A stretch of 63,025 nt of DNA from Chara braunii (GCA_003427395.1 BFEA01000041.1:805690-868714); one strand, 5' to 3'; positions 53,642 to 53,820 are shown, counted from the first letter of the stretch. A program made the numbers and translations. The notes: generated from the letters alone by a model not told the origin.

Positions 53642-53820
53642 GGTTAAGGTAGATTATCATTTACAGTGTAATCAGTGAGGGGATTCTGCAGACTGTTGAG
53701 GGTTCAGCCTCCTAATGAGTGGGTGAAACTCCGACGAAACAGTTTGTCACAGCCCCTCTTTTGTTGTCCTCTTCTCTCTCTCTCTGCCGACGGTTTACCG
53801 GGCAGTTCTGTTTGTGACGA
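53642..53820 (+). mobile_element. (TA)n-targeted hammerhead-carrying retroelement, copy B
   Basis: Ends ...GGTTTACCGGGCAGTTCTGTTTGTGACGA(TA)n. Aligns with copy A. Confidence 0.8.
53688..53747 (+). ncRNA. Type III hammerhead ribozyme, complete topology, G5A core change in this copy
   Basis: Stem III CAGACTGT (53689-53696) : ACAGTTTG (53739-53746). Cleavage after GTT at 53697. Stem I GAGG/CCTC with loop GTTCAG. Core CTAATGA (CTGATGA in the other two copies). Stem II GTgGG/CCGAC with loop TGAAACT. GAAA. Confidence 0.8.

Follow-up and report, generated by a model that had tools for sequence, protein, structure and literature searches.

A 63,025-nucleotide stretch of the Chara braunii assembly (GCA_003427395.1 BFEA01000041.1:805690-868714, hereafter the window; papers cite GCA_003427395.1 as the Chara braunii genome) contains a short repeated sequence that resembles a type III hammerhead ribozyme, raising the questions of whether the motif is genuine, what kind of mobile element carries it, and what, if anything, the ribozyme does for that element. 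An initial annotation, made from the sequence of the window, had described the repeat as a full type III motif in a 5'-truncated, non-LTR element with (TA)n-specific insertion, and had proposed that such an arrangement fits neither of the described classes of ribozyme-bearing retroelement (LTR-type retrozymes and Penelope-like elements) well and may be a new system. Here, we combine searches of the window with sequencing reads and contigs from the same organism, and compare the resulting family with published systems.

Results

The repeat contains a genuine type III hammerhead

Three loci in the window carry the motif at the places where it had first been noticed, and inspection of their sequences shows that all share a 24-nt segment, GTGAAACTCCGACGAAACAGTTTG, which spans loop II, stem II, the GAA element and stem III. 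This segment is exact at 53723-53746 (+) and 35553-35576 (-) and has a single mismatch at 62871-62894 (-), as compared with a chance expectation of zero occurrences in the window. The Rfam Hammerhead_3 model, the check that had been suggested for these copies, aligns end to end with copy 1 over 53690-53745, with a score of 30.9 bits and an E-value of 4.5e-05 for the 231 nt searched (approximately 0.01 when rescaled to the window), and gives 16.7 bits for copy 2; both scores lie below the Rfam gathering threshold of 48.5, and both refer to the lesion-bearing copies of the window rather than to the majority sequence of the family. These matches come from local searches only. Whole-window Rfam runs, at the gathering threshold and at E<=1, do not list the hammerhead, its absence from the latter being due to search filters that are stricter on long input.

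As had been claimed, each copy is damaged, and none of the window copies constitutes an intact ribozyme. Copy 1 bears a G5>A substitution in the core (53714) together with a C>G change in stem II (53721); copy 2 retains CTGATGA and has insertions both beside the cleavage site and within stem II; copy 3 is cut on its 5' side at CCTGATGA, such that the 5' strand of stem III and all of stem I are absent, and carries a single mismatch in stem II. A strict type III descriptor (exact core, G10.1-C11.1, U16.1-A15.1, H17 not G, and stems of at least 4, 4 and 5 bp) returns no match in the unaltered window and none in 200 shuffled windows, and one match in the majority-letter sequence of the family, in which stems I, II and III comprise 4, 5 and 9 bp. 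The minimum-free-energy fold of this majority sequence is a canonical three-way junction in which helices I and II are closed by loops and helix III is open, with the 5' and 3' ends lying within helix III. The core is complete in the majority (C3 U4 G5 A6 N7 G8 A9, G12 A13 A14 and A15.1-U16.1), with all 11 conserved positions and the three stems intact; CTGATGA is likewise present in copy 3. The Rfam match, the three-fold occurrence of GTGAAACTCCGACGAAACAGTTTG and the behavior of the descriptor on shuffled sequence rule out a chance motif. The motif is a genuine type III hammerhead, situated near the 3' end of an abundant and transcribed element that inserts into (TA)n (Table 1).

Two further points made initially about the motif can be added. 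The predicted cleavage site falls after position 53697, placing it 123 nt upstream of the element's 3' end at 53820, as originally calculated. The complementarity between TTCA in loop I and TGAA in loop II is also present; it has a probability of about 5% by chance, and the copies offer no variation against which the pairing might be tested.

Table 1. Features of the hammerhead-bearing family, and of the repeat that neighbors it, by position in the window.
Feature	Position	Strand	Remarks
Copy 1, longest clean copy	53590-53820	+	231 nt between two (TA)n tracts
Type III hammerhead of copy 1	53689-53746	+	Rfam RF00008 (30.9 bits), family majority letters, descriptor, fold
Copy 1 stem III	53689-53696 with 53739-53746	+	
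Copy 1 H17	53697	+	T
Predicted self-cleavage site, U17/G1.1	53697-53698	+	From hammerhead consensus and sequence; 123 nt from element 3' end
Copy 1 stem I	53698-53701 with 53708-53711	+	Loop I 53702-53707
Copy 1 core	53712-53718	+	CTAATGA; family majority CTGATGA
Copy 1 stem II	53719-53723 with 53731-53735	+	GTGGG; majority GTCGG
Copy 1 loop II	53724-53730	+	GAA at 53736-53738
3' tail common to all copies	53747-53820	+	CT-rich stretch, small hairpin, ends in GTTCTGTTTGTGACGA beside (TA)n
Inverted scrap TTGACGA	53577-53583	-	7 nt; 6 nt upstream of copy 1 5' end
Copy 2	35475-35672	-	About 83% identical to copy 1; hammerhead 35553-35620
Inverted scraps	35754-35767, 35743-35748	+	Just upstream of copy 2 5' end
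Scrap	35461-35468	+	Tail to tail with copy 2 3' end
Copy 3	62798-62907	-	5'-truncated within ribozyme; begins at CCTGATGA directly after (TA)n
3'-end copy	47223-47295	+	73 nt, without ribozyme
Direct scraps (TGACGA, TTTGACGA)	47154-47195		6-8 nt; upstream of the 47223-47295 copy
3'-end copy	51092-51167	+	5' side lost to assembly gap (N run 50222-51091)
3'-end copy	51859-51931	+	73 nt; 3 mismatches in terminal 30 nt
Two tandem 3'-end copies	58839-58868, 58887-58917	-	30-31 nt, (TA)n between
3'-end copy	36215-36240	+	26 nt
3'-end copy	50142-50167	+	Similar to 36215-36240 but more diverged
Further scraps	36624-36635 (+), 59685-59693 (-)		
Units of the ~770-nt repeat	53829-54596, 52908-53556, 47302-47888, 57312-57966, 58081-58703, 28144-29244, others		

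The family majority retains an intact ribozyme with an unusual cleavage-site base

We aligned four public runs from the same organism to 53628-53822 at 80% likeness, namely two of raw oligo-dT RNA reads, one of DNA contigs and one of RNA contigs. This 195-nt stretch attracted 9,585 distinct DNA contigs, along with 5,727 and 12,741 RNA reads when roughly 6% and 12% of the two raw-read runs were sampled. The majority sequence of the family departs from copy 1 at four places (53714 A>G, 53721 G>C, 53759 T>G and 53789 G>T). At the first of these, G is found in 98% of DNA depth and yields CTGATGA; at the second, C is found in 92% and yields GTCGG, which pairs with CCGAC. The majority letters at these two positions are identical in the RNA runs. 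The consensus that had been assembled from the window copies, with CTGATGA, GTCGG/CCGAC and pairing in stems I and III, is therefore borne out by the majority of the family in DNA and RNA alike.

Variants that reach at least 10% in one or more of the four runs occur at 53693, 53744, 53716, 53697 and 53698. Two of these are wobble-compatible changes in stem III (53693 C>T, which creates a G-U pair, and 53744 U>C, which turns G-U into G-C), and 53716 corresponds to N7 (U7), a free position of the core; G1.1>A at 53698 is the only disruptive variant in the set. This pattern is compatible with constraint, albeit statistically weak.

Natural hammerheads mostly have C or A at H17, and NUH triplets, including GUU, are cleavable. 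In the Chara family, U accounts for about 92% of DNA depth at H17, with C and A making up 7.5% and 0.7%, in keeping with the requirement for a base other than G. The initial annotation had suggested that the GTT at this site arose through CpG decay of GTC-G; as a process acting copy by copy, such decay is ruled out, since the two CpGs of the ribozyme, which lie within CCGACGAAAC, show no variant above 10% of reads and are thus kept in more than 90% of them. The predominance of T at H17, taken together with the retention of the other CpGs, indicates that the source copies themselves carried GUU. C17 reaches 42% of RNA reads in one orientation, where it is linked to variants at 53687, 53688 and 53693, a linkage suggesting that a subfamily is expressed from one or a few loci. 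In addition, about 60 DNA contigs at each of 53741 and 53743 match the ribozyme as far as ...GAAACAG, beyond which they carry a different, T-rich sequence, indicating that the ribozyme is a module present in more than one family of the Chara braunii genome.

Copies share a fixed 3' end and lie between (TA)n tracts

BLAST searches with the two long copies identify 10 copies of at least 26 nt in the window, to which a search for GACGA followed by TATA, scored by the extent of upstream match to the tail, adds approximately eight scraps of 6-14 nt. The initial annotation was thus correct in its three hammerhead-bearing copies but undercounted the family to which they belong. The element's last 30 nt occur seven times in the window at up to 3 mismatches, and all copies end in ...GTTTGTGACGA (or ...GTTTGACGA) with (TA)n on both sides. 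Homology between copies 1 and 2 spans 53642-53820, and the reads indicate that the family extends upstream of 53642 as well; the insertion block of copy 2 between its TA tracts reaches 35721, with an upstream part that is unlike copy 1. The three ribozyme copies lie 9-18 kb from their neighbors on mixed strands, the sole same-strand pair being about 27 kb apart. The window copies are dead, and no effect on neighboring genes is evident.

Within the common tail, the hairpin of copy 1 reads CTGCC..CGG-TTTA-CCG-GGCAG. Separately, the bases just after stem III (GTTTGTCACAG, 53744-53752) approximate a direct repeat of the element's 3' terminus (CTGTTTGTGACGA, 53808-53820), and the two can also form 6-9 bp when the 123-nt 3' fragment is folded, in a structure whose stability does not exceed that of shuffled sequences.

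The family is transcribed, and sense RNA rises beyond the predicted cleavage site

The family is abundant in both raw RNA runs and in the RNA contigs, which derive from another study. Upstream of the cleavage site, reads in the two orientations are equal in number (276 against 295 in the first run, 830 against 839 in the second). Downstream, reads in one orientation climb to 3,246 and 6,971, whereas those in the opposite one reach only 864 and 1,625. Assuming a standard stranded library, the rising orientation is the sense strand of the element. DNA depth over the same span rises only about 1.6-fold, and sense RNA per DNA depth increases approximately 5-fold across 53698-53725 in the two raw-read runs and approximately 15-fold in the RNA contigs of the other study. 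A step of this kind, which is what loss of an upstream cleavage fragment is expected to leave, is suggestive of cleavage, but a few expressed truncated copies would produce the same effect.

The ends of the reads bear on both of these possibilities. Among read starts in the RNA runs over the 195-nt stretch, no position at which many molecules begin passed the threshold, and the 5' ends of copies are scattered, with no pile at G1.1. Read ends do occur at 53698-53699 (in one run 240 reads, along with several RNA contigs and joints leading back from the tail) and are not commoner there than at neighboring positions. About 60% of RNA reads continue into unrelated flanks, indicating that much of the RNA is read-through of embedded copies. 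The commonest loose ends are found before 53715 and 53726, where the flanks agree with their consensus at 0.58-0.65; agreement as high as 0.65 implies that a few expressed truncated copies contribute heavily, confounding the depth step.

Other features of the window

A second abundant repeat, of about 770 nt, also abuts (TA)n tracts. It starts with CAGGGTAACCGGCGTTCGGG and ends in ...CGTTCGGCCTGGTAACGC, has imperfect inverted ends and internal A-rich runs, and looks like a TA-targeting MITE. Copy 1 of the hammerhead family sits in the TA tract between two tandem units of this repeat, which are spaced by 1,024 nt; the direct repeats that surround copy 1 belong to the ~770-nt family and hence are not retrozyme LTRs. 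Two units that lie head to head account for spurious microRNA matches at 57254-57337.

The only annotated gene of the window, and the only one called in a 23.5-kb locus, is a single-exon gene at 40089-43619 (+), the 1,176-aa product of which has a MuDR DNA-binding domain; a search with this protein found no relative besides itself among a candidate list that its low-complexity tail possibly filled. A decayed Ty3/gypsy pol occupies 13609-15621 (+) as short frames matching RVT_1, RT_RNaseH and the integrase core. A match to U2 snRNA at 44580-44705 (-) scores 54.9 bits, above the Rfam gathering score; it covers the 5' half only, with an A-rich run in place of the 3' half, and probably represents a captured fragment or retro-pseudogene. 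At 38416-38474 (+), a weak match resembling U6 snRNA scores 25.5 bits, as against a gathering score of 44.

Discussion

Affinity with Penelope-like elements of the same genome

The suggestion that this element fits no described class is not supported by comparison with the literature on Penelope-like elements (PLEs). Craig et al. 2021 curated three kinds of Chlamys-type PLEs in C. braunii; one kind has a Josephin-like extension, Chlamys-2_cBra combines a "canonical 3'-HHR" with a gag-like upstream ORF, and an endonuclease-less PLE-X type of the same genome has canonical hammerheads too (PMC8557442). Members of the Chlamys clade attain very high copy numbers in C. braunii, strongly favor microsatellites as targets and are often 5'-truncated; they also form partial tandems and leave inverted truncated copies next to their 5' ends, and in Chlamydomonas there are non-autonomous elements whose 3' ends are common to autonomous ones (PMC8557442). 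The copies described here show the corresponding traits: a constant 3' end with frequent 5' truncation, (TA)n insertion for every copy, partial tandems at 58839-58917 and 47154-47295, and inverted scraps that closely precede copies 1 and 2 on their 5' sides. Since the tandem and inverted pieces are all very short, the PLE pattern appears in miniature.

The family thus resembles the Chlamys-type PLEs of C. braunii, with which it shares a genome, in its very high copy number, its 3'-proximal hammerhead, its 5' truncation, its bias toward microsatellites and its tandem as well as inverted partial copies (PMC8557442), although the match to Chlamys-2_cBra or PLE-X is one judged from published description rather than by sequence comparison. 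As a point of difference, the window contains no RT, GIY-YIG or gag-like ORF. A search of 149 open frames of at least 93 aa, and of the larger ORFs in the window, found no PLE-type RT or GIY-YIG, the only domains in window frames being those of the decayed Ty3/gypsy pol and the MuDR domain; the copies are therefore truncated or non-autonomous, and it is from their traits that we infer the link to PLEs. Protein searches with the MuDR-like ORF, an ORF of the neighboring repeat and the gypsy integrase fragment returned the window's own protein or nothing, and a ribozyme 20-mer had 0 matches when metagenomes were scanned. Speaking against a PLE origin are the lack of a PLE-type RT or GIY-YIG in the window, the scattered 5' ends of copies and the lack of an RNA start pile, the large share of read-through RNA, the usual Chlamys targets of (CA)n and (C)n, with (TA)n being the preference of Naiads (PMC8557442), and the type I topology of published PLE hammerheads; the main text of Craig et al. 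2021 gives no type for those of Chara (PMC8557442). Weighing these points, we favor, with some reserve, the view that the copies are dead, 5'-truncated insertions of the 3'-terminal module of an abundant non-LTR family, consisting of a type III hammerhead and a tail of about 123 nt, and that this module is most likely either the 3' end of a Chlamys-type PLE or a non-coding passenger that borrows the enzyme of one.

Comparison with other ribozyme-bearing and non-coding elements

The passenger version of this view has a precedent in MRC1 of Chlamydomonas reinhardtii, which is likewise short and non-coding and has only its 3' end in common with an autonomous partner; MRC1-like elements also form head-to-tail insertions and can be very active, but they belong to another host lineage and have no reported hammerhead (PMC8557442). 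Naiad PLEs have the same preference for (TA)n, but are metazoan and without canonical hammerheads (PMC8557442). Canonical PLE hammerheads resemble the Chara arrangement in being terminal-repeat ribozymes of a non-LTR, TERT-related retroelement, with a proposed role in trimming tandem transcripts (Cervera and de la Pena 2014, PMC4209133; Lunse et al. 2017). They differ in topology: those of animals are mostly minimal type I motifs with a tiny helix III that act as dimers, and those of Selaginella are canonical type I (PMC4209133, PMC7761336), whereas the Chara motif is a monomeric type III hammerhead with a helix III of 8-9 bp.

In topology, the closer likeness is to the LTR retrozymes of angiosperms, which are also non-coding and transcribed and carry type III hammerheads with closed stems I and II (Cervera et al. 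2016, PMC4918200); the Chara core, together with stem II and loop II, resembles the Rfam type III consensus. However, LTR retrozymes possess LTRs of about 350 bp, each with a ribozyme, as well as a tRNA-Met primer-binding sequence, a polypurine tract and a 4-bp target duplication, and are thought to be mobilized by Ty3/gypsy elements (PMC4918200), whereas the insertion style of the Chara copies is target-primed. No direct repeat belonging to the family flanks any window copy, each copy has one ribozyme, and the window lacks the tRNA-Met primer-binding sequence TGGTATCAGAGC even when 1 mismatch is allowed. With neither LTRs nor a tRNA-Met primer-binding site, and with a single ribozyme per copy, an LTR retrozyme is ruled out. 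The original description of a full type III motif in a non-LTR, 5'-truncated, (TA)n-inserting element distinct from LTR retrozymes accordingly agrees with the copies, their flanks and the primer-binding-site search. Metazoan non-LTR retrozymes, in turn, are non-coding and thought to be PLE-dependent (Cervera and de la Pena 2020, PMC7229834; Li et al. 2026, 10.64898/2026.07.22.740005), but consist of tandem 150-300 bp monomers with type I motifs and abundant circular RNA (PMC7229834), whereas the Chara copies are dispersed, with a single type III motif each and no tandem ribozyme pair in the window. An array of this metazoan type is ruled out by the type III topology and by the spacing of the ribozymes (9-18 kb, or about 27 kb for the same-strand pair). 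A tRNA-derived SINE was also rejected, no tRNA-like head having been found.

A putative route of insertion, and its alternatives

If the module is indeed mobilized by a PLE enzyme, the pattern of copies would be accounted for by a scheme in which that enzyme, the priming by TA pairing and the cleavage itself are all putative. An element endonuclease would nick a (TA)n tract, and the exposed TA end would pair with (UA)n following ...GUGACGA in the RNA to prime reverse transcription. Most syntheses would stop early, leaving a ladder that runs from scraps of 6-14 nt to copies of about 230 nt, and the second nicked DNA end would at times act as a primer as well, giving rise to the inverted scraps just upstream of both long copies. 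Where source copies form partial tandems, ribozyme cleavage of the transcript would fall 123 nt short of the point at which the upstream unit ends, such that read-through RNA would be trimmed to a defined 5' end. Hammerhead cleavage is slower with U17 than with the usual C or A; in the Chara family, U17 might consequently slow cutting enough for some RNA to stay whole and serve as template for copies that span the ribozyme, such as copies 1 and 2.

The borrowed enzyme might instead come from a (TA)n-specific LINE that recognizes the 3' tail, with the family as its SINE-like passenger, in which case the small tail hairpin could act as the recognition element. Some site-specific LINEs (R1/R2-type) and their partners exhibit 5' truncation, a fixed 3' end and microsatellite-specific insertion, which count in favor of this possibility. 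The window nevertheless contains neither a LINE ORF nor a tRNA-like head, and the copies end without poly(A) or a LINE-type 3' repeat. Moreover, inverted 5'-end scraps and tandem partial copies are typical PLE traits (PMC8557442), and hammerheads are known in PLEs, whereas LINEs bear HDV-like or twister motifs at their 5' ends (PMC7761336); we consider a LINE partner very improbable. A self-standing, retrozyme-like non-coding element, the tandem units of which are cut at two hammerheads to yield a monomer that is ligated into a circle and copied by a borrowed RT, accommodates other aspects of the data. Copies 1 and 2 cross the cleavage site, which requires an uncut or re-ligated template; pairing of the TA target with an internal (UA)n of the circle would account for the fixed 3' boundary even if the RNA had no defined 3' end; head-to-tail joints that connect the tail to 53698-53699, the first base after the cleavage site, are present among RNA reads and contigs; and a 2026 preprint derives animal non-LTR retrozymes from Penelope-like pLTRs (10.64898/2026.07.22.740005). 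Yet no same-strand hammerheads in the window lie closer than about 27 kb, leaving no excisable unit, and back-joints to 53698-53699 do not outnumber those to 53703, 53706, 53715, 53722 or 53726, in reads and contigs where circles are not distinguishable from tandem DNA. A DNA contig has some of these other back-joints (to 53715 and 53726), and the joints are best read as tandem truncated DNA copies. A circular intermediate is unlikely in our estimation.

A more pressing alternative concerns the ribozyme rather than the enzyme: the hammerhead may be an inert, inherited passenger that performs no useful cleavage and has no role in transposition. The predominance of U at the cleavage site (about 92% of DNA depth), a stem I of only 4 bp and the lack of an RNA 5'-end pile at the site are what such a passenger would show, and most Chlamys and all Naiads thrive without hammerheads, which may merely parasitise elements (PMC8557442). 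Conversely, the family majority preserves 11 of 11 core positions and each of the three stems; variants exceeding 10% occur at U7, at H17 and at wobble-compatible positions of stem III, with G1.1>A as the only disruptive one, in a pattern that is statistically weak; and sense RNA per DNA depth rises over 53698-53725, an increase (about 5-fold, and about 15-fold in RNA contigs) that a few expressed truncated copies could mimic. We regard an inert ribozyme as a real possibility, although not the one that we would expect.

Implications

The element most likely represents either the tail of the 3'-hammerhead PLEs already reported in Chara braunii or a passenger on them, and as such is only modestly new; what may be novel is the type III topology in a PLE setting, together with the (TA)n target and the GUU site. 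A bolder proposal would be that streptophyte algae carry a distinct class of ribozyme retroposon, with a monomeric type III hammerhead about 123 nt from the 3' end, PLE mobilization and microsatellite targeting, that is ancestral to the type III ribozymes of land-plant retrozymes and viroid-like RNAs, and in which a slow GUU site balances trimming against preservation of whole template; we think this unlikely. For genome annotation, the many scattered type III hammerhead matches in the Chara genome probably represent this family and its sister families, and need no separate explanation. The family also offers a convenient system for testing whether a ribozyme benefits a retroelement. Finally, for the type III hammerheads found in plant retrozymes and viroid-like RNAs, reviews propose an origin either by horizontal transfer or by descent from PLEs; a transcribed and hugely amplified Chara family that combines a complete type III hammerhead with Penelope-like insertion would be a natural bridge.
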